Shown here one piece after another: positions 8,001 through 54,157 of a DNA stretch of 64,000 nucleotides; the first letter of the stretch is position 1; every line of letters begins with the position of its first letter. Origin of the DNA: Macrostomum hystrix (lineage: Eukaryota > Animalia > Platyhelminthes); assembly GCA_950097015.1 (NCBI GenBank), contig CATNEN010000034.1, positions 7,068,001 to 7,132,000 on the forward strand. Reading direction: 5' to 3'. The translations under genes were made by a program, and so were the position numbers. Under the pieces are notes generated by a model. It worked only from the letters and a program-made list of their open reading frames with translations, ran no database searches and had not been told where the DNA came from.

Positions 8001-10305
8001 ATCCTCTACCAATGCAGATCCTCAGTAAATCCTCTGCCAATTCAGATCCTCAGTAAATCCTCTACCAATTCAGATCCTCAGTAAACCTCTACCAATTCAG
8101 ATCCTCAGTAAATCCTCTACCAATTCATATCCTCAGTAAATCCTCTACCAATTCAGATCCTCAGTAAATCCTCTGCCAATGCAGATCCTCAGTAAATCCT
8201 CTGCCAATGCAGATCCTCAGTAAATCCTCTACCAATTCAGATCCTCAGTAAATCCTCTGCCAATGCAGATCCTCAGTAAATCCTCTACCAATTCAGATCC
8301 TCAGTAAATCCTCTGCCAATTCAGATCCTCAGTAAATCCTCTACCAATTCAGATCCTCAGTAAATCCTCCGCCAATGCAGATCCTCAGTAAATCCTCTAA
8401 CAATTCAGATCCTCAGTAGATCCTCTACCAATTCAGATCCTCACTAAATCCTCTACCAATGCAGATCCTCAGTAAATCCTCTGCCAATGCAGATCCTCAG
8501 TAAATCCTCTGCCAATGCAGATCCTCAGTAAATCCTCTAACAATTCAGATCCTCAGTAAATCCTCTACCAATTCAGATCCTCAGTAAATCCTCTACCAAT
8601 TCAGATCCTCATTAAATCCTCTACCAATTCAGATCCTCAGTAAATCCTCTACCAATTCAGATCCTCAGTAAATCCTCTGCCAATGCAGATCCTCAGTAAA
8701 TCCTCTACCAATTCAGATCCTCAGTAAATCCTCTACCAATGCAGATCCTCAGTAAATCCTCTACCAATTCAGATCCTCAGTAAATCCTCTGCCAATGCAG
8801 ATCCTCATTAAATCCTCTACCAATTCAGATCCTCATTAAATCCTCTACCAATTCAGATCCTCAGTAAATCCTCTACCAATTCAGATCCTCAGTAAATCCT
8901 CTGCCAATGCAGATCCTCAGTAAATCCTCTACCAATTCAGATCCTCATTAAATCCTCTACCAATTCAGATCCTCAGTAAATCCTCTACCAATTCAGATCC
9001 TCAGTAAATCCTCTACCAATTCAGATCCTCAGTAAATCCTCTACCAATTCAGATCCTCAGTAAATCCTCTACCAATTCAGATCCTCAGTAAATCCTCTAC
9101 CAATTCAGATCCTCAGTAAATCCTCAGTAAATCCTCTACGAATTCAGATCCTCAGTAGATCCTCAGTAAATCCTCTACCAATTCATATCCTCAGTAGATC
9201 CTCTGCCAATTCAGATCCTCAGTAAATCCTCTACCAATGCAGATCCTCAGTAAATCCTCTGCCAATTCAGATCCTCAGTAAATCCTCTACCAATGCAGAT
9301 CCTCAGTAAATCCTCTGCCAATTCAGATCCTCAGTAAATCCTCTACCAATTCAGATCCTCAGTAAATCCTCTACCAATTCAGATCCTCAGTAAATCCTCT
9401 ACCAATTCAGATCCTCAGTAAATCCTCTACCAATTCATATCCTCAGTAAATCCTCTACCAATTCAGATCCTCAGTAAATCCTCTGCCAATTCATATCCTC
9501 AGTAGATCCTCTACCAATTCAGATCCTCAGTAAATCCTCTGCCAATTCATATCCTCAGTAAATCCTCTACCAATGCAGATCCTCAGTAAATCCTCTACCA
9601 ATTCAGATCCTCAGTAAATCCTCTACCAATTCAGATCCTCAGTAGATCCTCTACCAATTCAGATCCTCAGTAAATCCTCTACCAATTCAGATCCTAAGTA
9701 TATCCTCTACCAATGCAGATCCTCAGTAAATCCTCTAACAATGCAGATCCTCAGTAAATCCTCTGACAATGCGGATCCTCAGTAAATCCTCTAACAATTC
9801 AGATCCTCAGTAAATCCTCTAACAATTTAGATTCTCAGTAAATCCTCTACCAATTCAGATCCTCAGTAAACCTCTACCAATTCAGATCCTCAGTAAATCC
9901 TCTACCAATTCAGATCCTCAGTAAATCCTCTACCAATTCAGATCCTCAGTAAATCCTCTACCAATTCAGATCCTCAGTAAATCCTCTGCCAATTCAGATC
10001 CTCAGTAGATCCTCAGTAAATCCTCTACCAATTCAGATCCTCAGTAAATCCTCTACCAATTCAGATCCTCAGTAGATCGTCAGTAAATCCTCTACCAATT
10101 CAGATCCTAAGTAGATCCTCTACCAATTCAGATCCTAAGTAAATCCTCTACCAATTCAGATCCTAAGTAAATCCTCTACCAATTCAGATCCTAAGTAGAT
10201 CCTCTACCAATTCAGATCCTCAGTATATCCTCTACCAATGCAGATCCTCAGTAAATCCTCTAACAATGCGGATCCTCAGTAAATCCTCTAACAATGCAGA
10301 TCCTT
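2012..10305. repeat. 8.3-kb array of a 28-nt unit (TTCAGATCCTCAGTAAATCCTCTACCAA), about 295 copies, with higher-order structure
   Basis: Period of 28 read directly. The same variant string recurs at 3181 and 3825 (offset 644 = 23 x 28). Confidence 0.97.
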
Positions 10306-13491: not shown

Positions 13492-16476
13492 ACTTAAAGG
13501 AAATGAGGACGCTGGTAAAATACTACTTTTTCATATCGTCAGTATCACATTTTTACCACATTTAAATCGTAACTTCTGTACTCCCTTCTAACAATCTAAC
13601 TAACCGCCTTCAGTTTGAGTAACAGTCGCTTGCTCTTGGTCGTTTTTACTCTAGAGGTGAGGCACATTTTGTTTATTTAACACATCTCAATCAACCCTAT
13701 ATTAAACTCTCTTTACTGTGTGTACACTAGCTATATTTTCTTGAGCTCGTAGCTCACCAAAAAATGTAAGTATTTTTTAAAATCGATTTTAGTGAAACAA
13801 TAACTATCACTGCCGATTAAACGGTCGATAATTTTTCTCGCATACTCGTAGGATAGGGGAATTTTAATCATTTTACGGGTTTTGGTGTTCATGGCTTTGG
13901 GCAAATTTAAAACTTGGTACACTCCGTAATTTATAAAATATCGTTAACTTTTTCTACCTGTTAATTCCGCTGCGAAACTAAATAATGTGTTTTATTCTTA
14001 ATTTTGTATAGAAATGTTTCTATTTTTCCTGCTTACTCCAGATTAACAAAGTGAGCTCTTTTGTCGGTGTTGATTTATTTTTTATTAGTCATCATGTCCT
14101 TTGTGCGCTACTAACTAGTAGCGAGCAGTAGCGTGGTAAGCAAAAACTAAAGATTTCTATTTTAGAACTGTTCCGAAAGTTGACTTTAAAGCGCTTTTGT
14201 GTTGGAAAACGCCCACCTCAGTGTGTGTGAATTAAGCTTTTTATTTTTACGGATTAGTTTTTCGTGAAACAATACACTTTTTACTTTTGCGCACTTTAAA
14301 AGTGATATTTTTTACTTCCAAATGTTTAGATTTCAATATTATCATCTTTCATACAAAATTGTTGCGCTTACAGTTTATGATTATCTTAGTTTTTTCTTCA
14401 CTTTATTTTCGGATTTGTATTATAGCTACTGAATCTAATCAGCAGTCTAAAAAAGTGGCTACTGTTAAAAGTCCAAAAGTTAGAATGTACTTTAAAACGT
14501 CTCGCTTTCGGGTAAACGACGGGTGTAACTATACCTTAGATGGTAAAGTTAATTGCTTCGCCATCTAATTAGTGACGACATAAAAGTAAATATTAAGGCT
14601 TAAGGTGGCGGATTAGCAGGGCCGAGATTAGGAAGAAGGAAGGCGACTGCAGTTTGCGAGATGCCAGTATGGTCAGTGGGAAGCGGAGAGACTGCAGCGG
14701 AGGGCCTTCCCAGTCTGACCTTGGACCGATCGATAATAGCCAGACAGACGGGAACTTGCTATAGAGGAGTGAGGGATGTCTGCAGGCCGGGGACGAGAGG
14801 GGAGCGAGCCAAAAGTGCAGACGGGTGAAGCGGGGGTTGGCTGATGTGGCGGCCAGTGTGTGGGACTGCGAATCCGGGTGAGAAGGAACTGGAACCGCAC
14901 CTCATCTTTTCTCCTTACTGCCGTTGTCTGTCTGTCTGACTGCGTGTCACTTCCCAGAGTCTGACGCCGGGATTGGGAATCCAGACTCACGCTCTGCCTC
15001 TGCCACTTTATAGCTTACTATTGCGACAATTTATAGGGCTGCGCTGTAGTAGGTGAGGATGTTACATGTGCTTCCGTGATGTCATAATTTAGTCCGTCTA
15101 TCAATCGGATTTTGTCAATCAATCGGTGAATTAGTTAAAAAAAATTACAGAAAAAAGCAGAGTGAAATTAATGTAATTCGGTCATTTTTTAATATCCCGT
15201 CGGCATTGGAAGACTGGGAATTTGGATTAGATGTATCAGCAGAAGTCACATCCTTGAGATGCCAACCTGCCAAACTGCTAGTTGGTTAATTAACAAATTG
15301 TTAACTTCACGGCTGAGCTGCCTGTCTGCGTTGGCAAAGTTAACGTCTCAGGGATTAGACAGAACCTGCTGCCACTGTTTGCACTTTAGGGCGAGTAAAA
15401 TGATATAAGATAAAATCTCAATCTGTCAGTAGTTAGATCCTAGATGGCTAGAAAGAGATATTTCAATTTACATGAAAATTTAAACTTTGAGGTGCAATAA
15501 ATTTGCACAATTTAGATTTATATTATATAGTCAGACATGTCAGCAATGGACATACCTTTTACGTTCTTTTGGGTCCAGACAGCGTGACCCCGCCTGATAC
15601 AGGCACCGCTAGCCGGCTCGGGTAGGACAAAAATGAAAAAAGTGTGCGGAGGCGGCGGACGATAGAGACGGGAGTAGGGCGGGACTCACTCAACGTGCCC
15701 TGCCATTTTTATCTGGGGCTTAAGGGGCCGGCGGGGGTGGTCGCAGTCGTTCTTTCCACTCTCCTCCCCTTGCAGTGAGAGACCCAGACAGACACGAGAG
15801 AGAGAGGCCCACGGGGAGAGAAGGAACGTATTAGACATAATAAACGGCCACAGTATTAGTAAACTGTGTATGATCGTATACTTTACAAAAGGCTGGGCGG
15901 CGCAGCGGGTGGCCTGGGGTTTTAGGCGTTAGAAAGGAGTTTGGAAGGAGGCTAGAGGGGCCATAAAAGTGAATGGAAAGGCAACTGCTCTCTGAATCTA
16001 ATTGGACGGGGGGGTGGTAGGTTGGGAATAGGCCCCAGTGCAGAGTAAAAAGAGTACAGGCGCACTCAAGGCAGTGCGCTTGTTCTGTCTGCCCAACCCT
16101 GTCTGTCTGGCTGTCTAGCTGGCTGACATGCTTACATTCTAAGCATAACGGTTTTTATCGCATTAACGAAATCAGTTTAATGTGTAACCGCTTTATTAAT
16201 ATCTGCTAATGCTATTTTTTTCCCGGAGTAGCAAGAATTAACCACGGAAAAAAGAATAGAATGGAGTGCTATTCTGAGCCAGCATTTTTTGTTTCGCTTT
16301 ATCTTCACTTTTGGCATCCTTGCCCCCGCGTTCCTTCCTATTGGCTCGTGAATGACATAGACGAACGCGTTTTATTATTTTATATTCTAATTAAATATAT
16401 ATGTAGATTAAATGCCTGCGTCTCTGGCAGCATAGGGCATGTTGAGCTGGTTTCTCGCAAATACGTTCGTCTATGG

Positions 16477-19400
16477 CTGGGGTCGGCAAACTCCGGCCCA
16501 CGGGCCAGATGCTCCCAAATCCGGCCCGTTGCCCCTTCCGGCACCTCTTAGTATACAGTTTCATCTTTCACTTGTCTCATCTCTTCCGTGTGTCATCTCT
16601 CCCGTGTCCCACCTCTTCCGTGTCTTATCTCTCCCGTGTCTCGTCTCTCCCGCGTCTTGTCTCTCCATTGTCTCGTCTCTCCCGCGTCTTGTCTCTCCCG
16701 TGTCTCGTCTCTCCCGCGTCTTGTCTGTCCATTGTCTCGTCTCTCCCGTGTGTCATCTCTCCCGTGTCTCGTCTCTCCCGCGTCTTGTCTCTCCCGCGTC
16801 TTGTCTCTCCATTGTCTCGTCTCTCCCGTGTGTCATCTCTCCCGTGTCCCACCTCTTCCGTGTCTTATCACTCCCGTGTCTCGTCTCTCCCGTGTTTCGT
16901 CTCTCCCGTGTCTTGTCTCTCCATTGTCTCGTCTCTCCCGTGTGTCATCTCTCCCGTGTCTCGTCTCTCCCGCGTCTTGTCTCTCCATTGTCTCGTCTCT
17001 CCCGTGTGTCATCTCTCCCGTGTCTCGTCTCTCCCGCGTCTTGTCTCTCCCGCGTCTTGTCTCTCCATTGTCTCGTCTCTCCCGTGTGTCATCTCTCCCG
17101 TGTCTCGTCTCTCCCGCGTCTTGTCTCTCCCGCGTCTTGTCTCTCCATTGTCTCGTCTCTCCCGTGTCTCGTCTCTCCCGCGTCTTGTCTCTCCATTGTC
17201 TCGTCTCTCCCGTGTGTCATCTCTACCGTGTCCCACCTCTTCCGTGTCTTATCTCTCCCGTGTCTCGTCTCTCCCGTGTCTCGTCTCTCCCGCGTCTTGT
17301 CTCTCCCGCGTCTTGTCTCTCCATTGTCTCGTCTCTCCCGTGTGTCATCTCTCCCGTGTCTCGTCTCTCCCGCGTCTTGTCTCTCCCGCGTCTTGTCTCT
17401 CCATTGTCTCGTCTCTCCCGTGTGTCATCTCTCCCGTGTCCCACCTCTTCCGTGTCTTATCACTCCCGTGTCTCGTCTCTCCCGTGTCTCGTCTCTCCCG
17501 TGTCTTGTCTCTCCATTGTCTCGTCTCTCCCGTGTGTCATCTCTCCCGTGTCTCGTCTCTCCCGCGTCTTGTCTCTCCATTGTCTCGTCTCTCCCGTGTG
17601 TCATCTCTCCCGTGTCTCGTCTCTCCCGCGTCTTGTCTCTCCCGTGTGTCATCTCTCCCGTGTCTCGTCTCTCCCGCGTCTTGTCTCTCCATTGTCTCGT
17701 CTCTCCCGTGTGTCATCTCTCCCGTGTCTCGTCTCTCCCGCGTCTTGTCTCTCCCGCGTCTTGTCTCTCCATTGTCTCGTCTCTCCCGTGTGTCATCTCT
17801 CCCGTGTCCCACCTCTTCCGTGTCTTATCACTCCCGTGTCTCGTCTCTCCCGTGTTTCGTCTCTCCCGTGTCTTGTCTCTCCATTGTCTCGTCTCTCCCG
17901 TGTGTCATCTCTCCCGTGTCTCGTCTCTCCCGCGTCTTGTCTCTCCATTGTCTCGTCTCTCCCGTGTGTCATCTCTCCCGTGTCTCGTCTCTCCCGCGTC
18001 TTGTCTCTCCCGCGTCTTGTCTCTCCATTGTCTCGTCTCTCCCGTGTGTCATCTCTCCCGTGTCTCGTCTCTCCCGCGTCTTGTCTCTCCCGCGTCTTGT
18101 CTCTCCATTGTCTCGTCTCTCCCGTGTCTCGTCTCTCCCGCGTCTTGTCTCTCCATTGTCTCGTCTCTCCCGTGTGTCATCTCTCCCGTGTCCCACCTCT
18201 TCCGTGTCTTATCTCTCCCGTGTCTCGTCTCTCCCGTGTCTCGTCTCTCCCGCGTCTTGTCTCTCCCGCGTCTTGTCTCTCCATTGTCTCGTCTCTCCCG
18301 TGTGTCATCTCTCCCGTGTCTCGTCTCTCCCGCGTCTTGTCTCTCCCGCGTCTTGTCTCTCCATTGTCTCGTCTCTCCCGTGTGTCATCTCCCGTGTCCC
18401 ACCTCTTCCGTGTCTTATCACTCCCGTGTCTCGTCTCTCCCGTGTCTCGTCTCTCCCGTGTCTCACCTCTTCCGTGTCTTATCTCTCCATTGTCTCATCT
18501 CTCGTGTGTCATCTCTCCCGTGTCTTATCTCTCCATTGTCTCGTCTCTCCCGTGTCTTATCTCTCCATTGTCTCGTCTCTCGCGTGTCTTGTCTCTCCAT
18601 TGTCTCATCTCTCCCGTGTCTCATCTCTCCCGTGTCTCACCTCTTCCGTGTCTTATCTCTCCCGTGTCTCACCTCTTCCGTGTCTCATCTCTCCCGTGTC
18701 TTGTCTCTCCATTGTCTCGTCTCTCCCGTGTCTTGTCTCTCCATTGTCTCGTCTCTCCCGTGTCTTATCTCTCCCGTGTCTCATCTCTCGTGTGTCATCT
18801 CTCCCGTGTCTTGTCTCTCCATTGTCTCGTCTCTCCCGTGTCTCATCTCTCCCGTGTCTCACCTCTTCCGTGTCTCATCTCTCCCGTGTCTCATCTCTCG
18901 TGTGTCATCTCTCCCGTGTCTTGTCTCTCCATTGTCTCGTCTCTCCCGTGTCTTGTCTCTCCATTGTCTCGTCTCTCCCGTGTGTCATCTCTCCCGTGTC
19001 TCATCTCTCCCGTGTCTCACCTCTTCCGTGTCTCATCTCTCCCGTGTCTCACCTCTTCCGTGTCTTATCTCTCCCGTGTCTCGTCTCTCCCGTGTCTTAT
19101 CTCTCCATTGTCTCGTCTCTCGCGTGTCTTGTCTTTCCATTGTCTCATCTCTCCCGTGTCTCATCTCTCCCGTGTCCCACCTCTTCCGTGTCTCATCTCT
19201 CCCGTGTCTCGTCTCTCCCGCGTCTTGTCTCTCCCGCGTCTTGTCTCTCCATTGTCTCGTCTCTTCCGTGTCTTATCTCTCCATTGTCTCGTCTCTCGCG
19301 TGTCTTGTCTCTCCATTGTCTCATCTCTCCCGTGTCTCATCTCTCCCGTGTCTCACCTCTTCCGTGTCTTATCTCTCCATTGTCTCATCTCTCCCGTGTC

Positions 19401-40923: not shown

Positions 40924-43900
40924 CTAGCCCAGTCGCAGCAGCGGCTCCTCGCCAGTGCTGGCTGACTGATCCTCGTCGGCTGCAGATGCGGCGGCCGCTT
41001 CGTCCCAAGCTGCGAAGATCGAATGCGGTGGCGGCTGCTGCGGCGTCTCATCGTCGAGGAAGTCGCGGAATTCTCGAACGCCGGTCGCAGCTGGCGCTGT
41101 GTTGTCGTCGTCTTCTTCCTCGTGCAGCGGGGTGGTACTCTCGTACTGGAAGCTGGTCTTGTTCAGGTCCATCTCGATTGGGAAGATTCGGCAGCCGCGC
41201 ATCACCTCGCAGCAGTCGTTGTGGTACTTGCTCATGGCCTGGACTAGGCGCTGCAGCTGGGACACTGTGTCCTGCACTGGACAGGTGGCAACAGGGTGAG
41301 ACTCTTTAGTGAGATGGGTGAGACTCCACTGTGAGATGGGTGAGACTCTGGTGAGATGGGTGAGACTCCACTGTGAGATGGGTGAGACTCTGGTGAGATG
41401 GGTGAGACTCTGGTGAGATGGGTGAGACTCTGGTGAGATGGGTGAGACTCTAGTGAGATGGGTGAGACTCTGGTGAGATGGGTGAGACTCTACTGTGAAA
41501 TGGGTGAGACTCTGGTGAGATGGGTGAGACTCTGGTGAGATGGGTGAGACTCTGGTGAGATGGGTGAGACTCTGGTGAGATGGGTGAGACTCTGGTGAGA
41601 TGGGTGAGACTCTGGTGAGATGGGTGAGATTCTTTAGTGAGATGGGTGAAATATCAGGTTGAGATGGATGAGATATCATGTTGAGATGGGTGAGATATCA
41701 TGTTAAGATGGGTGAGATATCATGTTGAGATGGGTGAGATTTAACGGTGAGGTGAGATTGGATTATTAGATAGGAGATATGAATGATGAGGTATAAGCAG
41801 AATTTATTCAGTCACATTTGTATCAGTTGGAATCCAATCACTAGTTTACTTAGTATTTACACTAGGCCGTGCGGGAGGCATATATGGTAAATGCTGCAGT
41901 GTTTGAACAAATACACTCCCATGGTTGAAGGCGCCAAATAATTTGAAAGCAAATGGACTAAGGACTAAGAATGAAGCCCGGTAATGGCATTTGTCAAACA
42001 AATCGAGGAATAATTTAAAATCGCCCTGCCAGACTGCACCAACCTGCCAAATTTTATTTGGCAATAAAGTCACGTAGTGCAAATACTTAGTGAGGGGAAG
42101 GACTAGAGAAGATGGGATTTGAGAACACTGGGATGGAATAGGGAAGATGGGATTTGAGAACACTGGGATGGAATAGGGAAGATGGGATTTGAGAACACTG
42201 GGATGGAATAGGAAAGATGGGATTTGAGAACACTGGGATGGAATAGGGAAGATGGGATTTGAGAACACTGGGATGGAATAGGAAAGATGGGAATTGAGAA
42301 CACTGGGATGAAAAAGAGAAAATGGGATTTGAGAACACGGGATGAAAAAGAGAAAATGAGATTTGAAAACACTGGGATGGAATAGGGAAAATGGGATTTG
42401 ACAACACTGGAATGGAAAAGAGAAAATGTGATTTGACAACACTGGGATGGAAAAGAGAAAATGGGATTTGAAAACACTGGGATGAAATAGGGAAAATGGG
42501 ATTTGAGAACACTGGGATGGAATAGGGAAAATGGGATTTGACAACACTGGGATGGAATAGGGAAAATGGGATTTGACAACACTGGGATGGAATAGGGAAA
42601 ATGGGATTTGAAAACACTGGGATGAAATAGGGAAAATGGGATTTGAAAACACTGGGATGGAATAGGGAAAATGGGATTTGACAACACTGGAATGGAAAAG
42701 AGAAAATGTGATTTGAGAACACTGGCATGGAAAAGAGAAAATGGGATTTGAAAACACTGGGATGAAATAGGGAAAATGGGATTAGAGAACACTGGGATGG
42801 AACAGAGAAGATGGGAATTGAGAACACTCGGATGGAATAGGGAAGATGGGATTTGCGAACACTTGGATGGAATAGGGAAGATGGGATTTGACAACACTGG
42901 GATGGAAAAGAGAAAATGGGATTTGAAAACACTGGGATGGAAAAGAGAAAATGGGATTCGAAAACACTGCGATGGAATAGGGAAGATGGGATTTGACAAC
43001 ACTGGGATGGAATAGAGAAAATGGGATTTGAGAAAACTGGGATGGAATAGGGAAAATAGGATTTGAGAACACTGGGATGGAATAGGGAAGATGGGAATTG
43101 AGAACACGGGGATGGAATAGGGAAGATGGGAATTGAGAACACGGGGATGGAATAGGGAAGATGGGAATTGAGAACACGGGGATGGAATAGGGAAAATAGG
43201 ATTTGAGAACACTGGGATGGAATAGGGAAGATGGGAATTGAGAACACGGGGATGGAATAGGGAAGATGGGAATTGAGAACACGGGGATGGAATAGAGAAA
43301 ATGGGACTTAAGAACAGAGGTTGTTTTACAGAGAAATGCAGAGATTACCTAAAGCATTTTTGGCGATAGGTAACCAGTCAGTTATATTGGGAATTTTTCA
43401 GCATCTGCTCACCGTGCTTATTGTCCAGCAGTTCAATCTTCACCAAAACATCGTTGCGCATTTTAGCGAATCGGCTGCGAGCTTCCTGACGGCAGCGCAA
43501 GATAAGCCTGCGAGGGATCAGAACAAATAGGAGAGGATTTAACGTTGTTATTGTAAAAATCCCTATTAGTAACACTTGCACTACTGATTAACTAGCCACT
43601 CACAAACAGTCTCACCTGTACTCACAAACAGTCTCACCTGAACTCATAAACAGTCTCACCTGAACTCACAAACAGTCTCACCTGAACTCACAAACAGTCT
43701 CACCTGAACTCATAAACAGTCTCACCTGAACTCATAAACAGTCTCACCTGTACTCACAAACAGTCTCACCTGAACTCACAAACAGTCTCACCTGAACTCA
43801 TAAACAGTCTCACCTGTACTCATAAACAGTCTCACCTGTACTCACAAACAGTCTCACCTGAACTCATAAACAGTCTCACCTGAACTCATAAACAGTCTCA

Positions 43901-46900
43901 CCTGTACTCACAAACAGTCTCACCTGAACTCATAAACAGTCTCACCTGAACTCATAAACAGTCTCACCTGTACTCACAAACAGTCTCACCTGAACTCACA
44001 AACAGTCTCACCTGAACTCATAAACAGTCTCACCTGAACTCATAAACAGTCTCACCTGTACTCATAAACAGTCTCACCTGAACTCACAAACAGTCTCACC
44101 TGAACTCATAAATAGTCTCACCTGTACTCAAAAACAGTCTCACCTGTACTCACAAACAGTCTCACCTGAACTCATAAACAGTCTCACCTGAACTCATAAA
44201 CAGTCTCACCTGTACTCACAAACAGTCTCACCTGTACTCACAAACAGTCTCACCTGTACTCACAAACAGTCTCACCTAAACTCATAAACAGTCTCACCTA
44301 AACTCATAAACAGTCTCACCTGTACTCACAAACAGTCTCACCTGAACTCATAAACAGTCTCACCTGAACTCATAAACAGTCTCACCTGTACTCATAGTTG
44401 CCACTCTCCACCCGGTAGAGAGGTTCCTGCATCGCCGCAAAGCTGTACTCTTCGTCATCCATTTCCTTCACTTTCAGACAGTAAGACTAAAAGCAATTAA
44501 AAATCCGAGTTGCTAATATCATAAATACTACAATGCCACTGTAAATGAGATAGCAAAATTCACTACCCACCAGATACTCAAACTTGCAGTCCAGGTATTT
44601 CTTAATTGTCAGGCGCGTATCTGGCACCACCTTCGTCAGGAATGTGTTCATATCGCTAATCATCTGCAAGCGATGACGTGTGGGATACATACTGGTTAGA
44701 ATTGACTGTGTCAGAGACATCTGACTGTGTCAGAGACATCTGACTGTGTCAGAGACATCTGACTGTGTCAGAGACATTTGAATGTGTCAGAGACATCTGA
44801 CTGTGTCAGAGACATCTGACTGTGTCAGAGACATCTGGCTGTGTCAGAGACATCTGACTGTGTCAGAGACATCTGACTGTGTCAGAGACATCTGACTGTG
44901 TCAGAGACATCTGGCTGTGTCAGAGACATCTGACTGTGTCAGAGACATCTGACTGTGTCAGAGACATCTGACTGTGTCAGATACATTTGACTGTGTCAGA
45001 GACATTTGAATGTGTCAGATACATCTGTCTGTGTCAGAGACATTTGACTGTGTCAGAGACATTTGAATGTGTCAGATACATCTGTCTGTGTCAGAAACAT
45101 CTGTCTGCGTCAGAGACATCTGTCTGCGTCAGAGACATCTGACTGTGTCAGAGACATCTGACTGTGTCAGAGACATCTGACTGTGTCAGAGACATTTGAC
45201 TGTGTCAGAGACATCTGACTGTGTCAGAGACATCTGACTGTGTCAGAGACATCTGACTGTGTCAGAGACATCTGGCTGTGTCAGAGACATCTGACTGTGT
45301 CAGAGACATCTGACTGTGTCAGAGACATCTGTCTGCGTCAGAGACATCTGACTGTGTCAGCGAAATCTGTCTGCGTCAGAGACATCTGACTGTGTCAGCG
45401 AAATCTGTCACCGTGTCAGTCAGAGACATCGCTGAATTCAGTAGTACACAATGTCAGTGAGCTGATTGTTAGCAATCCATGCCCAACCAATGAAGCGATG
45501 ACAATTAAACATTCGCTGCTATTGGCTGGGCCTCAGAAAGAAAATAAGATAATAAAACAGCGCAACAGAAAGGAATGAATGCAAAAGACAAAGCTAGAAC
45601 CAACCGGTTTGACAGTCTTCAAGCATTCAATGGCCGCCTGCTCCATCCTGCGGTGAGTGCCACCAAACTGGGTGAAGGCCTCGGAGGCTCGCGGCTGCGG
45701 CTCCTTGACGCCAATCTCGGACAAGATCTCGCCGAAGACGCGTTGTACCTGGCTGAGCCGGTAGAAGGCCTTGATGAGACACTTAGTCTGGTTCATCAGG
45801 CCGAAAAACATGCCGGCTGTCCGGTTCATCTCGTCCAGTTTCTTAAGCAGGCCGTCTGCGGGATAACACGGACAGGAAGACATGATTTTAGTGAATAGGC
45901 GCGGCTAGGCATAAATTAGGTGGCATAGGATAACACAGACAGTAAGCATTTGTTACACAAATCAGGTACGACACTAAACGACAACACTTAGATATACGCT
46001 ATCGATCACTAAGTGACTAACTCACAAAGTCACTGAGTCACTAATTAGATCAGGTATGACCAAGACCTGACTAGATCAGACATGACCAAGATCTGACTAG
46101 ATCTGGTATGACCAAGATCTGACTAGATCAGGCATGACCAAGATCTGACTAGATCAGGCATGACCAAGATCTGACTAGATCGGGTATGACCAAGATCTGA
46201 CTAGATCAGGTATGACCAAGATCTGACTAGATCAGGTATGACCAAGATCTGACGATTATCATATTGAGTAAATTTTATGATTGGATCATGATCTGATCGA
46301 AACGAGCATGACGGGGGGAGTTAACACGATTGGTCCTGACATCTAACTTTGCACCTCTGACACCCTTAAGAACCGTGGCGAGGTCGGCAGGTCGTCACTA
46401 CCTGGCCTGGCTTCTGCTTCTAGTTGCAGCAGCGTCTCCAGCAAGGTGTGTCACATTGCAGTTTATCAACTGCACGCAAAACAGCGTCGATTTTGACGCT
46501 GTCTGCCAACGAGCCATCGACGGAGTGAAGGATGGCAGTTTCTATCGTGGCAGCTGCAGCCATACTACGCGAAAAGTTTACGGCGGCTGGTGGACCGGCT
46601 ACTTTGGGGCAAGTCTTGGCGAAGTTTCACACCTTTCTAGATTGCTCTCTTGTGGAAAAGAGCCATGGATTACAATGCGCCGTGTTGTGTATTTTCGTCG
46701 CTATAGTAGCACGAGTCTCAAACATTATGTGACACCTGAAGTAAAACTCATCGTTGCAGACCAAAGCGGCTGTGCGCAATGTGACAATCTGGAACAGGCA
46801 GGACTGCTGCTCAGACAGGCTTAACAATTTCGATCTGAAAGTTGGCGACACCCTTTGCCAAAGTGCCGCCTCGCTTGGAGGCCAGGCTAGCGCCACGCTC

Positions 46901-49900
46901 GACTGCCGAGGCATTAGTGGCGCTAGCGTTACCATAGCAACCAGGCTTGGCGAGGCTCTGACACTTTGCGAAGTGGAAGCGACGGGAGACTACATTAATC
47001 CAGGTGAAATTATAGTCGATTCCCGGCTTGTTTAAAAATCTAGCAAATGTTTTTAAGGAACTCAACTTTGGTAAGTCGCTGGTAGGTCCACAGATACTAT
47101 AACAGTGTTTTATTATATGTGTGTCCACGAGTTCAAACGAAGCGACACCCATTCGGCTGCATACTTTTCCCAGCGACGATGTGGTTGCCAGTGAATGACA
47201 ACGTCTGCCTTAACTAGAATTCATTGAGCTGGCACTCATCCACAAAAGAGGCTTGCGTTTCTGCAACACTTTTCGTCGACGAAGCCTACAGCTGCCCTGC
47301 TTTGCGAGACAAACCGCACTTGAGATTGCGGTGGAATGCTGTTACTGACAAGCAGCGGCTGGCCGCCCGCCCTGACGTCCTACATCAGACCCTGGCCGCC
47401 CGACCTGACGTCCTACATCAGACCCTGGCTGCCCGACCTGACGTCCTACATCAGACCCTGGCCGCCCGACCTGACGTCCTACATCAGACCCTGGCTGCCC
47501 GACCTGACGTCCTACATCAGACCCTGGCTGCCCGACCTGACGTCCTACATCAGACCCTGGCCGCCCGACCTGACGTGCTACATCAGACCCTGGCCGCCCG
47601 ACCTGACGTCCTACATCAGAGCCTGGCCGCCCGACCTGACGTCCTACATCAGAGCCTGGCCGCCCGACCTGACGTCCTACATCAGACCCTGGCCGCCCGA
47701 CCTGACGTCCTACATCAGACCCTGGCCGCCCGACCTGACGTCCTACATCAGAGCCTGGCCGCCCGACCTGACGTCCTACATCAGAGCCTGGCCGCCCGAC
47801 CTGACGTCCTACATCAGAGCCTGGCCGCCCGACCTGACGTCCTACATCAGACCCTGGCCGCTCGTCCTGACGCCTTACAGCACCAAGACAAGCGCCAAGA
47901 CAGACTTAGAAAGGAAACAGTTATCAACTTGTTATTAAAGCTCCAACTCTTTAGCCATCAAGTTCCTTCGTTTTGACCATAAATGAGAGTGCACTCAACT
48001 TTGATAATTTGAAAGCCTACATGTAGGGATGATTTCGTGACTAAGCTGACACGAAAACGCCAATACGTCACTTTTGCAATCTATTTTTAGATCGTTTGAC
48101 GCATCCGTGCTCGTTCACGCTACTAACCAAAGACTAAAAATCTAAATAAAAGTGAACTATCTAGGGTTAAAGTATCTGTGGGTAGGTCTGCGAGATTAAA
48201 AACAAGCATGCACTTTTAAAGAATTGTCTATGCAAAAAAACTGATATAAATAAAAATAGGTGATGCTAAAGGTATTACACCTTTTCCCATTCAATTTCAA
48301 CAAATCTGCGCTGCAATTTAGACAACTTGACATTCATTTTCAATACTCTATTTTTATACCTTCAGTTGGACGTTCAAATTAGACAAAGCTGACTTCAATT
48401 TAAACAGCAGATATTCGATTTAGACAGTGGATATTCAATTTAAACACTTCCTCATTGAGAGCGATTTGTCTATGGTAAAATTCTAGTTCTGAGGCAAAGC
48501 ACGTATTCAATTTAGACACGCTCAGCTTCAGACCCTTGCTTTCCTGTCGCCTCTGCTTCTGACTTTCGGAGAGAGAATTGGAGAGACTAATGTACATTCT
48601 GTAAGATACATATACTCAGTTTATTGTCTATGGAAAGATTGAAAACCGAGATTGAGACTGTAAAGGAAAATGATTTCTGGCCTTGTGGCATTGAATTTAG
48701 CACAGATAAAACGGCGGTCGTTGAACAAGAGAGAAGGCTACTTCTGAGAATTGCTTCTTTCGTGAAGAATATCTGTCTACTGATCTAACGCACGAACATG
48801 GAGGAAGAGGTGAACGGACCGGAGTCAGAAGCGACCGGAAGCGACGTTGATGGCCGCGGCCCGTACGTGCGAATCACGAATCAGGATCGAGCGCGCCTGC
48901 TGGATGCTCATAACAACGGCGAGGACTTCCTGAATTTGGCGGCACTGATGAACATCAAAAGGACGACGGCATACTCAATGCCACAAGGCCAGAAATCATT
49001 TTCCTTTACAGTCTCAATCTCGGTTTTCAATCTTTCCATAGACAATAAACTGAGTATATGTATCTTACAGAATGTACATTAGTCTCTCCAATTCTCTCTC
49101 CGAAAGTCAGAAGCAGAGGCGACAGGAAAGCAAGGGTCTGAAGCTGAGCGTGTCTAAATTGAATGATGGGTGTCTAAATTGAATACGTGCTTTGCCTCAG
49201 AACTAGAATTTTACCATAGACAAATCGCTCTCAATGAGGAAGTGTTTAAATTGAATATCCACTGTCTAAATCGAATATCTGCTGTTTAAATTGAAGTCAG
49301 CTTTGTCTAATTTGAACGTCCAACTGAAGGTATAAAAATAGAGTGTCGAAAATGAATGTCAAGTTGTCTAAATTGCAGCGCAGATTTGTTGAAATTGAAC
49401 GGGAAAAGGTGTAAGACTTGGATACGACACTGTTTAAAATTGGAATTCCTACTTTTTTTCTACTATGAGTAGTTAAGACAAGACTTTCATTTAAGTTAAT
49501 TTAACAACATCGAATGATAAGACGACTAAGAAAGCATTAATATAAAGCATTAGCAACTAGACGAGTCCAAACCATTGCATAGGATGGCCCGGCTAAGGCC
49601 GAGAGCGTCGGCAGTATCGTTGGACATACTTTCAACCACCTTGTGCTTAACCTTCTTCAGTACTATTGAGAATGGTAGTAATTAAATTGCAGAGGTAGGG
49701 TGGGCTAGTTGTGAGTAAAGCATCTATAAACTACAGTAACCATACAGCAGTACATTGTAAAGTTCACCAACTCAAATTTCGCTTCAGCAATTTACTAAGC
49801 AATTGTTTAGTCTAATGGTGTAAAATTAGCAGAAAATCATTTTAGAGGATTACCAGAAAAAAACTGACTGCTTTGATCCGATCAAAATTGGTATTTAGCC

Positions 49901-52900
49901 TACACGCGCGGAAAAAAAGCGACAAAATTTGTTAGAAAACATTTCAAATGGAAATTATAATCACTGCATGTTGCTGGTCAAATTCTCAGAGACTGACCAA
50001 ACAAAAGCCTTACCATTGACGAGAACCGCTCTGGATAGGCCCAGACCGTCCGCTGTAGAACTGGACATGGACTCAACAACTCTGTGCTTGGCCTTCTTCA
50101 GTACTTTAATAATTTTTTTAATAATTTTTTAATTGCGAAATCGTTCCAGAATTTAACGGAACTAGCGAAGATAGGGAGGCGAGGCGATATAGAGACGGCA
50201 GGGGACAATTGAGTAGAGGAAGCAGTCTGCGGGAAAACCAAAGGACAGTGTAGGCTCGAGCTGAGAGTAAAGTAGATAGCAGAGTAAAGCAGGTCATAGT
50301 GTTGTAAAGTAGGTCATAGTGTTGTAAAGTAGGTCATAGTGTTGTAAAGTAGGTCATAGTGTTGTAAAGTAGGTCATAGTGTTGTAAAGTAGGTCATAGT
50401 GTTGTAAAGCAGGTCATAGTGTTGTAAAGCAGGTCATAGTGTTGTAAAGTAGGTCATAGTAGGTTAGAGAAGGTCATAGTAGGTTAGAGTAGGTCATAGT
50501 AGGTTAGAGAAGGTCATTGTAGGTTAGAGTAGGTCATTGTAGGTTAGAGAAGGTCATAGTAGGTTAGAGAAGGTCATAGTAGGTTAGAGTAGGTCATTGT
50601 AGGTTAGAGTAGGTCATAGTAGGTTAGAGTTGGTCATTGTAGGTTAGAGTTGGTCATTGTAGGTTAGAGTTGGTCATTGTAGGTTAGAGTAGGTCATTTT
50701 AAGTTAAAGTTGTGTGAGTAGGTCATTGTAAGTTAGAGCAGGTTAGAGTAGATCATGGAAGGGTGGAGTATGTCATAGCAGGGTAGAGTAGGTCATGGCA
50801 GGGTAGAGTAGGTCATAGCAGGGTAGAGTAGGTCATAGCAGGGTAGAGTAGGTCATAGCAGGGTAGAGTAGGTCATGGCAGGGTAGAGTAGGTCATAGCA
50901 GGGTAGAGTAGGTCATAGCAGGGTAGAGTAGGTCATGGCAGGGTAGAGTAGGTCATGGCAGGGTAGAGTAGGTCATGGCAGGGTAGAGTAGGTCATAGCA
51001 GGGTAGAGTAGGTCATAGCAGGGTAGAGTAGGTCATGGCAGGGTAGAGTAGGTCATGGCAGGGTAGAGTAGGTCATGGCAGGGTAGAGTAGGTCATAGCA
51101 GGGTAGAGTAGGTCATAGCAGGGGTGCCTGTAGCTCAGACGGGGTGAGTAAGAGCTAGAGAGCGGTTAATTCGTTTCCCTTTCGTGCCAAGGTCCCTGAG
51201 CTCGATTCCGCGGCGAGGCCACATTAATTTGGGGCGCAGTCGCGGAGAGAAGGTTTGGGGGCTTGCTGTGCAATTTACGTCTTTGGGGGCCAACCTCCAA
51301 GGCACAGTGAGAGTGTGCACTGCCAGACAACGAGAAAGTCAGGGCAGATGTACAAACCTGAGTGTGTGAAAGTGTGTGCCTGCGTACAGTATCTGTCTGT
51401 GTGTGTGCTCAGGAATCAGCGGAATGGGCAGAATTGCCTCCTCGATGGCTGCAGTCACCAAACGTTGAGTTGCAGTTGAGAGCTTGCTAGCAGAAAAAAG
51501 ATTATAATTGACAAAAAATACAATATAGAGGCATTGCATCAGACATTAGCTGAAAATAACAGATAAAAAAGGAAAAAGCATGTAAAGTGGCAGCATCAAA
51601 GTGAGCATTAATTATGCATTACAAAATTAACTGTAATAGAGCTTATAGCTGATTCACTAGCTAAGAAACAAAAAACTATTTTCTAATTTCAAATACTTTT
51701 TTCAAATACAGTCCACCGTGTGTGGACTGTAACCTCATGGTCTATAGACTGTAACCTCATGCTCTATAGACTGTAACCTCATGGTCTATAGACTGTAACC
51801 TCATGCTCTATAGACTGTAACCTCATGCTCTATAGACTGTAACCTCATGCTCTATAGACTGTAGCCTCATGCTCTATAGACTGTAGCCTCATGGTCTATA
51901 GACTGTAGCCTCATGGTCTATAGACTGTAACCTCATGGTCTATAGACTGTAACCTCATGGTCTATAGACTGTAACCTCATGGTCTATAGACTGTAGCCTC
52001 ATGGTCTATAGGCCGTAATCTCATGGTGTGTGGACAGTAATCTCATAGTGTGTGGACAGTAATCTCATGGTCTGTAGACGTCTGACGACGTGATCGATAG
52101 GCTATGACATGAAAACAATGAGTAATAAGTATAATAATTTTCACTTACTTATATCTAAGCTCTTGCCCTGCTTTGGATCGGCGTGCAAGCAGTTGTATCC
52201 GATGGTGACTGTGCCCTGTCAGATTAAAACAAACTTTTAAATTGCATTTGCTACCAACACAACTGCAACCTACCAACACAACTGCAATGTACTGCTAGCG
52301 GTTGCCCTCACCTTGAAGCTCTGGATGAGTCTGGCCACTTCCACTTTGCTCCTGGACTTGACGCTCTGACCATTGACGCTGACAATTTCATCGCCGCTCT
52401 TCAGCGTGCCCTCCTTGGCGGCTGGCGTGTTGTCGAAGATCTGCACGACATACAGGCAGGGGCAGTAGGGTGCACCGCCTCCTATGCTGATTCCGATGAG
52501 GTTCTGGGCGTCCTTCTCTAGTGTCACCACGCCTGAGGTGACCCGCATACCCCTGAATGAATATGTGTGAATGAAACTATTTTAATGGTCTGGTAAATGT
52601 GCTGATCTCAAATTATTATTAGGTAAATTAATTTTAAGAACTAGCAAAGATATATTAATCGCACTTACAAATGTTCTATCACGTTATTCAGTTAAATTTG
52701 TTAAACTATTAGCCAGAGAAAATATCAATGTTTCAATGTTTGTTATAGTGTGTCACTCTTGTTAGAATTAAAGTAAAGTAGCAATAATTACTGTGTTTTG
52801 CATCACCATGGGTTACCTCATGTCATGACGAACAGTGATGAGTTCTTTGGGATCAGTTGCATCATCACAAAATGTACTCAGAGGTAGATAGCCTTTATAA

Positions 52901-54157
52901 TCCTCAGATTTCTCCATTGGAGTTTATCTAAGCAATGAACACAATTATAAAGTAGTTTAAAAATGAAATTTACCTGCCTTTTATTGGCAATTTAAATTTT
53001 TTTTTCTAAAGTATTGTCTCATTAATATGTTAGGTAGTAAAAGTGACCTCTTGTCAATTTTTATAGCCCTTAGACCTTTTAATAGCTAAATTGAACTAAA
53101 CTAAAAGGCATCAATTCATTATAGAATTAATAATATATTTCTATAAATGTACAATGTGTCAAGATAATTTTTCTTGTTATTAATTTTGTATGCTTCTCAC
53201 TTTGAAAATATTTTTATTATAAATTAATGTTCCTTCAAAATGAATAATGTTTATTTTTTTACTAATTTGCAATAATATCATCTAACAAAGTTATAAGATT
53301 AATACAATCCAATTAGATAATTATTTGCTCATAATGTTATTTATATTACAAACCTCTAACTTTTTACATATTGTCATAAAATTTATAAAAATGTAAATAA
53401 TTAATCTTAGACAATGAAAAATAACTTATGCATGTTAATTTAAGTTTTCATTATTAGCAGCAAGTTTGCAGCATAGTGATAGAACAGCTAGCATTCTCCT
53501 TAGTCAATTAGAAAAATTAAATAGAAAATTCAACACCAAACATTATGGTTGTTAAGTTAGTTTTTGCAAGGTAGCAAGGTAGTTCAAAGCTACCAAAGTC
53601 TCTAATAAGACCAAATCCAAGGTTTAGCAAGTGTATACTAATAAGGGGCACAGTTTTGTATGGACATATTATGGCTTGTCAATAACCTGATCTATAGCAA
53701 GTCACATTAGGTAATATATAATATATAACAAGTCATCTTAGGTTATAGAAACCTACCCTATAGATTTGTGCATACATATATGTGTGCTCCAGAGTTATTT
53801 AAAATGGCATACAAATTAAGAATGTCTTATATAAAAATGGATCCTTTAAGGTCTTTTTACTCTTTGTTAGCATTGTTTACTTGTTTTATATAAACTTGCC
53901 TTTTTGTAGACAAAGATTTTTTGGCTTTTGGCTAACTTAATAGGAACATCAAATAAGCTAGCTATTATATGAAAAAAAATAATATTAAAATACCACTTTT
54001 TTCTGCAAATTTTGAAACAAGTAATATTTCTTTAAAGTCTAGTCTCCAGTAGTTTAAACACAAACAGTAAAAACGTGGTTTCGACTGTTAATCGTGGCAC
54101 AAAAATACCCACTTACATTTTATCTTCTTCAACTGGATATCCATAATCGTCATACAT
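40924..54157 (-). CDS. PICK1: PICK1 (PDZ + BAR + acidic tail), 443 aa; exons in transcript order 54157-54117, 52552-52312, 52215-52149, [50103-50014 or 49662-49573], 45855-45605, 44663-44571, 44486-44386, 43507-43413, 41276-40924
   Basis: Motifs: PDZ NLIGISIGGGAPYCPCLYVVQIFDNTPAA, linker HADPKQGKSLDIILKK.KH..VESMS..TAD.LGLSRA, BAR segments GVKEPQPRASEAF, DTRLTIKKYLDCKFEYLSYCLKVKEMDDEE and YRLILRCRQEARSRF. All introns are GT-AG, phases are consistent, and the total is 1332 nt. Confidence 0.97.
41295..41740. repeat. 20-nt minisatellite (TGGGTGAGACTCTGGTGAGA)n in the last PICK1 intron
   Basis: Period of 20; it ends about 18 nt from the acceptor. Confidence 0.93.
42107..43318. repeat. 35-nt minisatellite (GAGAACACTGGGATGGAATAGGGAAGATGGGATTT)n in the last PICK1 intron
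   Basis: Period of 35, about 34 copies. Confidence 0.95.
43598..44392. repeat. 22-nt minisatellite whose unit contains the PICK1 5' splice site (minus strand GTGAGACTGTTTATGAGTWCAG)
   Basis: Period of 22, about 36 copies. The terminal copy overlaps the exon end TATGAGTACAG|GTGAGA at 44386. Confidence 0.95.
44702..45410. repeat. 19-nt minisatellite (GACTGTGTCAGAGACATCT)n in a PICK1 intron
   Basis: Period of 19, about 37 copies. Confidence 0.95.
46045..46252. repeat. 26-nt minisatellite (GACTAGATCAGGTATGACCAAGATCT)n
   Basis: Period of 26, about 8 copies. Confidence 0.92.
46375..47035 (+). CDS. Secreted F-type (fucolectin/FTP domain) lectin, about 169 aa, nested antisense in a PICK1 intron; exons 46375-46608 and 46760-47035 (3' end may splice onward at 47004)
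   Basis: Signal-peptide-like ARSAGRHYLAWLLLLVAAASPA. F-type lectin motifs RAIDG, GSCSHT, WW, NRQDCCSDRL and LTLCEVE. Joining the exons gives H-X27-R-X-D-X4-R versus the canonical H-X26-R-X-D-X4-R. The join needs a GC-AG intron (GGG|gcaagt..gttgcag|ACC). No in-frame ATG is present. Confidence 0.8.
47358..47862. repeat. 33-nt minisatellite (CTGGCCGCCCGACCTGACGTCCTACATCAGACC)n
   Basis: Period of 33, about 15 copies. Confidence 0.94.
48278..49411. mobile_element. Non-autonomous Tc1/IS630-like element with about 417-bp TIRs (foldback-like deletion derivative), TA TSD
   Basis: 48278-48694 is a near-perfect reverse complement of 48975-49411. Ends read TA|CACCTTTTCCC...GGGAAAAGGTG|TA. TTCAATTTAGACA-like motifs are repeated inside the TIRs. 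Confidence 0.88.
48798..48975 (+). pseudogene. Truncated transposase N-terminal HTH remnant (RITNQDRARLLDAHNNGEDFLNLAALMNIKRTTAYS)
   Basis: The ATG-initiated ORF lies in the spacer between the TIRs and has an HTH-like pattern. It is cut exactly where the right TIR starts, and no DDE domain remains. Confidence 0.65.
49573..49662 (-). CDS. PICK1: PICK1 alternative exon 4B (ILKKVKHKVVESMSNDTADALGLSRAILCN)
   Basis: 90 nt, phase 1-1, acceptor ccattctcaatag and donor gtttgg. This copy is the closer match to human VLKKVKHRLVENMSSGTADALGLSRAILCN. Confidence 0.92.
50014..50103 (-). CDS. PICK1: PICK1 alternative exon 4A (ILKKAKHRVVESMSSSTADGLGLSRAVLVN)
   Basis: 90 nt, phase 1-1, strong donor gtaagg and an A-rich AAG acceptor. 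23 of 30 aa are identical to 4B, with many synonymous differences and no stops or indels. Confidence 0.85.
50285..51120. repeat. Compound 20-nt minisatellite with three successive variants sharing an AGGTCAT core
   Basis: Units change from AGGTCATAGTGTTGTAAAGT to AGGTCATAGTAGGTTAGAGT to AGGTCATAGCAGGGTAGAGT. Confidence 0.93.
51718..52075. repeat. 22-nt minisatellite (GACTGTAACCTCATGGTCTATA)n
   Basis: Period of 22. Unit junctions form the palindrome GTCTATAGAC. Confidence 0.92.

Follow-up and report, generated by a model that had tools for sequence, protein, structure and literature searches.

A gene on the minus strand of the window, the 64,000-nucleotide stretch of the Macrostomum hystrix genome analyzed here, encodes an orthologue of PICK1. 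Its protein has a PDZ and an Arfaptin/BAR domain, and the linker between the two is specified twice, by adjacent 90-nt exons designated a and b. We favor, with moderate confidence, the reading that an old tandem exon duplication occurred in one of the two Macrostomum PICK1 paralogues, that both copies were kept, and that exon 2 is joined to either. The two copies are probably used as alternatives, and they differ within the amphipathic helix through which PICK1 acts on membranes.

The identity of the gene was established from both of its domains. The PDZ exon matched solved PICK1 PDZ structures in the PDB (E 7e-34), including the CPC motif region, as well as Pfam PDZ, and Pfam Arfaptin matched three later exons, exon 5 among them. 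Analysis by tblastn revealed that the locus is collinear with the M. lignano PRKCA-binding protein P0124, which is ~74% identical to mollusc, nemertean and brachiopod PICK1. The gene therefore has the two defining features of PICK1, a PICK1-type N-terminal PDZ domain and an Arfaptin-type BAR domain following a conserved linker. Database searches with the C-terminal exon and M. lignano PICK1 as queries did not retrieve a full-length product of this gene, and therefore no isoform with a or b; a query with the exon a peptide found no Macrostomum transcript fragments, its sole matches being two single-exon ORFs from eukaryote contigs (L001 and L002). The exon layout is given in Table 1.

Table 1 Features of the PICK1 gene in the window. 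Positions are those of the whole stretch.
Feature	Position	Strand	Evidence and remarks
Exon 1, MYDDYGYPVEEDKM...	54118..54157	-	Start codon at 54157; tblastn with M. lignano P0124 residues 1-14; donor AAAAT/gtaagt
PDZ-domain exon	52312..52552	-	PDB PICK1 PDZ, Pfam PDZ; spliced to exon 2 in X2-X4 contigs
Exon 2, GTVTIGYNCLHADPKQGKSLDI	52149..52215	-	End ...GATATAA/gtaagt; supplies first base of the Ile codon opening a and b
Linker/amphipathic-helix exon a, …KKAKHR…ADGLGLSRAVLVN	50014..50103	-	Acceptor A-rich (attattaaag), donor strong (gtaagg)
a-b intron, 351 nt	49663..50013	-	Unspliced coverage, depth 7-8 in X2-X4
Candidate RNA-pairing arm (weak) within the a-b intron	49895..49922	-	Partner 51197-51224, upstream of exon a; RNAduplex
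Linker/amphipathic-helix exon b, …KKVKHK…SND…ADALGLSRAILCN	49573..49662	-	Acceptor ttctcaatag, donor weak (gtttgg)
Exon 5, Arfaptin/BAR start, DGLLKKLDEMNRTAG…	45605..45855	-	Pfam Arfaptin E 6e-15; reads DGLLKKLDEM... from 45855
Remaining BAR and C-terminal exons	40927..44663	-	tblastn with P0124, Pfam Arfaptin
Approximate blocks	44663-44571, 44486-44385, 43509-43414, 41277-40930 (to stop)	-	tblastn; borders approximate

Exons a and b sit between exon 2 and exon 5. Both are stop-free, are in the same phase, and are preceded by AG and followed by GT. With one base contributed by exon 2, a reads ILKKAKHRVVESMSSSTADGLGLSRAVLVN and b reads ILKKVKHKVVESMSNDTADALGLSRAILCN, and the reading frame of each stays open into exon 5. 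Seven of the 30 residues and 28 of the 90 nt are different (62 identical, 69%), with no indel; the first 12 nt are common to both (TACTGAAGAAGG), and divergence starts at exon position 13. Re-reading of the coordinates thus upheld the earlier note, which had described a 90-nt exon pair of equal length and phase with seven amino acid differences and neither stops nor indels. The alignment score of a with b was 11.9 sd over shuffles, and that of the adjoining 150 nt on each side was at shuffle level; the likeness ends exactly at the exon borders. Neighboring homologous exons that match in length and phase and have intact splice sites are what is expected of a mutually exclusive pair.

The substitutions separating the copies bear on their age. 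In a pairwise comparison of a with b alone (NG86), dS was about 1.7–2.0 (saturated) and dN was 0.22, with omega about 0.13. When 28 substitutions were placed randomly on exon a, none of 100,000 runs kept the number of residue changes at seven or below, and a stop arose in 47%; so conservative a pattern lies well outside chance expectation. Judged by this dN/dS comparison, which the earlier note had proposed, a and b are an old duplication with both copies preserved by purifying selection, as that note had supposed. Exon a most resembles the only linker exon of the paralogue P0124 from M. lignano (dN 0.066); the corresponding value for exon b is 0.20, so ~3 times more residue change has accumulated in the b lineage than in a. 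Among the five b-specific residues, four (V5, K8, N15 and C29) are found at or next to the same positions in working PICK1 of other animals, a pattern that neutral decay would not yield.

The exon coincides with a functionally characterized helix. In the numbering of the mammalian P0095 protein, V121 and L125 fall at exon positions 5 and 9. In PMC8884907, PICK1 V121E-L125E is given, citing Herlo et al. 2018, as a helix mutant, and mutation of V121/L125 is stated to abolish fission activity; to that extent the assignment of the membrane-binding helix to this segment is borne out. The V121 position is Ala in a and Val in b, and the hydrophobic moment of the first helix was 0.29 for a, 0.35 for b and 0.34 for a mammal. 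Exon a ends …LVN, as is typical of flatworms, and b ends …ILCN, as is general among animals. The earlier note had also listed loss of the ILCN cysteine among the differences: the cysteine is indeed absent from a, which has Val, but its absence is flatworm-wide rather than peculiar to a, and the Cys of b is the general animal state.

To place the pair among relatives, other PICK1 loci were compared. A single copy was found in three M. lignano P0124 loci (which represent the second PICK1 paralogue, the closest M. lignano relative of the present gene being P0003), in the parasitic flatworms Taenia, Schistosoma and Calicophoron, in the nemertean Tubulanus, and in L001 and L002. Among 120 PICK1 proteins, 119 have one linker of fixed length; the sole exception is a Tupaia gene model with two identical linker copies. 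The exon pair is absent from the relatives sampled, and the expectation of one copy in vertebrates, and in other animals, agrees with these data. Our literature search found no paper tying PICK1 to mutually exclusive exons or exon duplication, and no paper on Macrostomum alternative exons of this tandem-duplicated kind.

Whether the pair could stem from misassembly, either as a spurious tandem duplication or through collapse of a homeologue, was also considered. Macrostomum genomes are duplicated and repeat-rich, and the Tupaia gene model has its two identical linkers; here, however, identity between the copies is just 69% and their flanks are unrelated. Independent RNA contigs from runs X2–X4 run mismatch-free through b, the a-b intron and a, and organism A supplies a contig that spans a and its flanks. 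We rejected this explanation as hardly credible. The organism A contig (run X1) is unspliced and covers exon a, and its four listed differences all lie in the flanking introns.

Evidence for use of the exons came from RNA in the form of assembled contigs (k=31 graph), of which the informative runs, X2, X3 and X4, all belong to one study. In these contigs the PDZ exon is joined to exon 2 (joint 52214>52311, depth 36–44). Depth bookkeeping over the same contigs revealed that exon a exceeds its flanking introns, at roughly 7–12x above intron level, and in all three runs contigs break at a's acceptor, at a's donor and at b's acceptor (49662/49633). Exon a is in use. The spliced PDZ–exon 2 contig stops 12 nt beyond exon 2 in each run, matching the length over which a and b are the same; for splicing of exon 2 to a alone, the k=31 graph would be expected to extend ~30 nt into a. 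Given this stop together with the break at b's acceptor, exon 2 is read as joining b as well as a. We infer an exon 2-to-b junction, use of the b donor, and transcripts that would not carry a and b together.

The joint listing is dominated by a high-copy repeat at about 51160–51450, and none of the 15 joints listed, of 30, links a to b or exon 2 to either copy; 18-nt anchors may escape placement. No junction out of exon b, b-to-exon 5 included, was seen in the contigs. For these contigs the extra letters are available as a count of 12, and the branch that they mark could in principle reflect variation between alleles or homeologues at exon position 13.

In X2, a single contig of depth 5.3 carries exon b and continues without a break into the intron downstream; this depth is no higher than intron level, so that use of the b donor is not seen in that run. 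This observation would fit a gene that yields the a form only, with b a recently silenced relic or never an exon here, as would the weak donor gtttgg, the greater residue change in the b lineage (dN 0.20 vs 0.066 to P0124), and the fact that the other M. lignano paralogue manages with a single a-like exon. Such disuse is hard to reconcile with an open frame, intact AG/GT borders and the lack of any indel despite saturated synonymous divergence, with b-specific residues that are states allowed in other animals, and with contig breaks at b's acceptor in three runs accompanied by the branch 12 nt past exon 2. We regard it as distinctly unlikely.

How strictly the choice between the copies is made was considered next to the architecture of the locus. 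Because transcripts with both copies or with neither stay in frame, and the a-b intron of 351 nt is too long for the copies to block one another sterically, some other mechanism would have to enforce exclusivity. The two introns are of the U2 type (GT-AG), and the search for an enforcing device in the sequence found no frame shift/NMD, short intron, U2/U12 mismatch or clear docking/selector pairing. An inverted-repeat scan of the locus returned only a foldback element and chance-level 16-mers, and neither Rfam nor tRNA searches gave a hit in the locus or in the high-copy repeat. One marginal pairing, between the arm in the a-b intron and its partner upstream of exon a, had an RNAduplex energy of -29.4 kcal/mol, about 3.3 sd beyond 48 shuffles (mean -23.1, sd 1.9, best -27.0), with the partner arm falling in the high-copy repeat. 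As a lead from this folding model, such a pairing would loop out exon a.

The same architecture would also accommodate alternative but non-exclusive splicing, in which b is a cassette added to a, or all four combinations (a, b, a+b and neither) are produced. Frame is kept in the both-in and both-out forms, a-to-b splicing is possible across a 351-nt intron, no convincing exclusivity mechanism was found, and an a-to-b junction would likewise give the contig break at b's acceptor. However, the stop of the PDZ–exon 2 contig 12 nt past exon 2 in three runs points to a direct exon 2-to-b junction, an a-to-b joint present in three runs should outrank single-run joints among those listed, and PICK1 proteins have one linker of fixed length in all of 120 but the model with two identical copies. 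We consider combined or optional inclusion rather unlikely.

For alternative use of a and b, we propose the following pathway. Tandem duplication of the 90-nt PDZ–BAR linker/amphipathic-helix exon would have taken place in one of the two Macrostomum PICK1 paralogues, with both copies retained since as coding sequence. In the pre-mRNA, exon 2 would be joined to one copy or the other. The main form in the RNA at hand would be copy a, whose helix is of the flatworm type, with Ala at V121 and the ending …LVN, and copy b would be a minor or condition-specific form with a general animal-type helix (Val, …ILCN end). The outcome would be two PICK1 proteins that are unlike on the hydrophobic face of the membrane-inserting helix.

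A bolder extension, which we regard as doubtful, is that the duplication predates the split of the Macrostomum PICK1 paralogues, that b preserves the ancestral animal helix from which a and the other flatworm genes drifted, and that the worm switches between a strong and a weak membrane-inserting helix in particular cells. This switch might be driven by the RNA loop hiding exon a. If true, a BAR protein would have its curvature sensing tuned naturally at the level of isoforms.

Within PICK1, it is the linker helix that detects membrane curvature and inserts into the curved bilayer. A natural exon pair differing at the membrane-inserting face would be a ready-made experiment, providing two accepted helices in one protein background, and Macrostomum can be bred and also made transgenic. 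The weight of the pair is limited because it occurs in a single paralogue within a single genus and its splicing pattern is deduced from contigs.

Mutually exclusive exons that arose by tandem exon duplication include the exon pairs of tropomyosin, ion channels and receptors, and those of Drosophila 14-3-3zeta. The PICK1 exons resemble these in being adjacent homologues with the same length and phase and separate splice sites, under purifying selection and encoding a swappable structural element. Unlike textbook exclusive exons, they lack an evident enforcing device and are candidates for exclusive use. In comparison with vertebrate PICK1, the exons encode the same protein segment, the linker amphipathic helix, with exon positions 5/9 equivalent to V121/L125; whereas that helix is encoded once in vertebrates, as in all other animals sampled, the present gene holds two versions, differing by Ala/Val at V121 and at six other residues. 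The pair thus joins the known class of tandem-duplicated alternative exons, to which PICK1 itself is a new addition.

The PICK1 gene was modelled from exon borders read directly on the sequence and from translation of the joined exons (see the table). An open stretch on the minus strand (52581-52273) matched solved PICK1 PDZ domains (E 7e-34), and Pfam Arfaptin matched exon 5 and exons near 44700 and near 43500. The two tandem 90-nt linker exons proposed in an earlier note, designated a and b, held to the base in coordinates and peptides when borders and translation were read. The copies are alike in phase, each taking one base from exon 2 and giving one base to exon 5, and their peptides differ at 7 of 30 residues.

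Exons of the PICK1 gene model
Feature	Position	Strand	Remarks
PICK1 exon 1	54157-54118	-	
PICK1 PDZ exon	52552-52312	-	
PICK1 exon 2	52215-52149	-	
PICK1 exon a	50103-50014	-	90 nt, AG before, GT after
PICK1 exon b	49662-49573	-	90 nt, AG before, GT after
PICK1 exon 5	45855-45605	-	Pfam Arfaptin
PICK1, four more exons downstream	stop near 40930	-	

Exons a and b are identical at 62 of 90 bases, with 12 codons showing a synonymous difference only; the synonymous pairs TCC/AGT and TCC/AGC (Ser) and AGA/CGG (Arg) are each two or three steps apart. Nei-Gojobori estimates gave a saturated dS of 1.7-2.0, dN of 0.22 and omega of about 0.13. When 28 random substitutions were placed on exon a (100,000 trials), 7 or fewer residue changes resulted in 0 trials and a stop arose in 47%. 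The alignment score of the two exons was 11.9 sd above shuffles, and the 150 nt flanking them on either side aligned no better than shuffled sequence. The duplication is ancient on these grounds, and nothing but the 90 coding nt has been retained. Free drift of one copy over much of that time would be expected to leave far more replacements, stops or indels, although a brief recent disuse of b may be compatible with one pairwise comparison. The suggestion of purifying selection on both copies is thus borne out by the pairwise omega at saturated dS and by the simulations.

The linker exon corresponds to residues 117-146 of a mammalian PRKCA-binding protein (P0095, Tupaia chinensis), with V121 and L125 at exon positions 5 and 9, so that the pair carries the PICK1 amphipathic helix, as had been proposed. 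V121E-L125E is described as a fission-incompetent helix mutant in a passage of PMC8884907 citing Herlo et al. 2018. At position 5, a has Ala and b has Val; the other differences are Arg/Lys at position 8, a variable Ser-rich turn, Gly/Ala at 20, Val/Ile at 27 and Val/Cys at 29. A simple estimate gave hydrophobic moments of 0.29 for a and 0.35 for b; the mammalian helix scored 0.34 and the other M. lignano paralogue 0.28. We infer that b may be a more strongly membrane-inserting helix of general animal type, and a a weaker one of flatworm type.

The C-terminal exon of the gene recovered M. lignano proteins including P0003, a damaged model closest to the window gene, and P0004, which clusters with the 440-residue PRKCA-binding protein P0124. 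Between the window gene and P0124, dS in the flanking exons is 0.5-1.0, and both types are present in M. lignano; PICK1 therefore has two paralogues in Macrostomum. In M. lignano GCA_002269645.1 the P0124 type occupies three loci (L007, L008 and L009) encoding the same protein, each with one linker exon and lacking a second. The upstream neighbour of P0124-type loci in M. lignano is an RRM gene, of which no counterpart was noticed beside the window gene. A single linker was also found in Taenia solium, Schistosoma guineensis, Calicophoron daubneyi, the nemertean Tubulanus and two further eukaryote contigs. The expectation of one copy in other animals was confirmed in these loci and in 119 of the best 120 PICK1 proteins, the exception being the Tupaia model P0095, in which residues 117-176 hold two identical tandem copies of the 30-residue linker exon, probably an assembly or model artefact. 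Within the sample, the pair appears confined to one Macrostomum PICK1 paralogue.

Two of the other loci showed further features. At the C. daubneyi locus, a weak linker-like match at 15899-15973 (VLMKFKAR...SALGLSRMFL, E 0.14, 3-residue gap), lying roughly 2 kb upstream from the true linker exon (17896-17985), could be either chance or a decayed duplicate. A 2.6-Mb eukaryote contig with very short introns (ENA ERZ25072076) has a single linker exon at 10082-10171, ending AVLVN as in a.

The linker ends in ILVN in all other flatworm PICK1 sampled and in ILCN in every other animal sampled; a ends in AVLVN and b in AILCN, and b is the sole flatworm sequence among the proteins compared with Cys at exon position 29. 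Exon a lies at dN 0.066 from the P0124 exon, and b at 0.20. These ends and distances, over the 90 bases compared, thus suggest one of two origins: either the duplication is older than the paralogue split and b was lost from the other gene, or b changed faster and reverted to Val and Cys, Val-to-Cys being two base changes.

RNA data were assembled Logan contigs. Those of X2, X3 and X4, all runs from a single study of organism B, agree with the window without mismatch and behave like RNA that includes some pre-mRNA: a contig of depth 36-44 lacks the intron of 96 nt that separates the PDZ exon from exon 2, and unique intron depth is about 5-8. In all three runs this spliced contig extends 78 letters past the joint, 66 on exon 2 and 12 placed on nothing nearby. 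Since a and b are identical over their first 12 bases and then diverge, these lengths suggest a fork between a and b, because in a k=31 graph splicing of exon 2 to a only would take the contig some 30 nt further, into a. The same pattern would arise from a near-identical gene copy carrying a variant at exon position 13. Unspliced contigs break at 50074 and 50043 (30 nt inside the acceptor and donor of a) and at the b acceptor (49662/49633), where spliced and unspliced paths are expected to meet. By our own bookkeeping of bin depths, exon a stands roughly 7-12x above the accounted-for contigs, and in X3 its adjoining introns are bare, so a is clearly used as an exon. Exon b is less clear: in X2 a single unbroken contig spans it together with 89 nt of the intron downstream, and the depth of 5.3 does not exceed that of introns; in X3 and X4, coverage includes b but not the following intron. 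Among the 15 of 30 joints listed, no joint left the b donor and none ran from a to b; the listing was dominated by a high-copy repeat at about 51160-51450. In X1 (organism A), an unspliced contig covers exon a, with 4/4 listed differences in the flanking introns.

Both-in and both-out transcripts keep frame, so NMD would be unable to police the choice, and with 351 nt between a and b steric exclusion does not apply. The introns of both are ordinary GT-AG. Exon a has an odd A-rich acceptor and a strong donor (gtaagg), b a fair acceptor and a weak donor (gtttgg), a mix typical of regulated exons. An inverted-repeat scan for docking/selector pairing returned a foldback element and chance-level matches alone. 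The best duplex, between 49895-49922 (a-b intron) and 51197-51224 (intron upstream of a), reached -29.4 kcal/mol, a value attained by 0 of 48 shuffles (mean -23.1, sd 1.9), several intron pairs having been tested. By looping out exon a, such pairing would favour b; because one arm falls in a high-copy repeat and several pairs were tested, we treat it only as a lead.

The large foldback (48272-49417), in the intron 156 nt downstream of the b donor, has arms of about 420 nt (48272-48694 and 48975-49417; 98-100% complementary) flanking a loop of 280 nt. It resembles a young palindromic or MITE-like insertion and would make a very long hairpin in pre-mRNA. Four tandem arrays occur within PICK1 introns, at 50276-51123 (20 nt x 42), 51725-52079 (22 nt x 16), 47359-47879 (33 nt x 16) and 46046-46253 (26 nt x 8). 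The exon 2-a intron holds a dispersed high-copy repeat (51160-51450), on which the summed depth of X2-X4 contigs reaches thousands, with numerous variants and joints inside the repeat; Rfam and tRNA scans of it found nothing.

The sequence comparisons indicate that the exon pair is real, old and under selection. Alternative use of a and b is likely, a being the predominant form in the available RNA; by analogy, strict mutual exclusivity is plausible, with no visible enforcing device. No comparable pair in PICK1 was found in the literature searched; exon pairs of this kind are already known.
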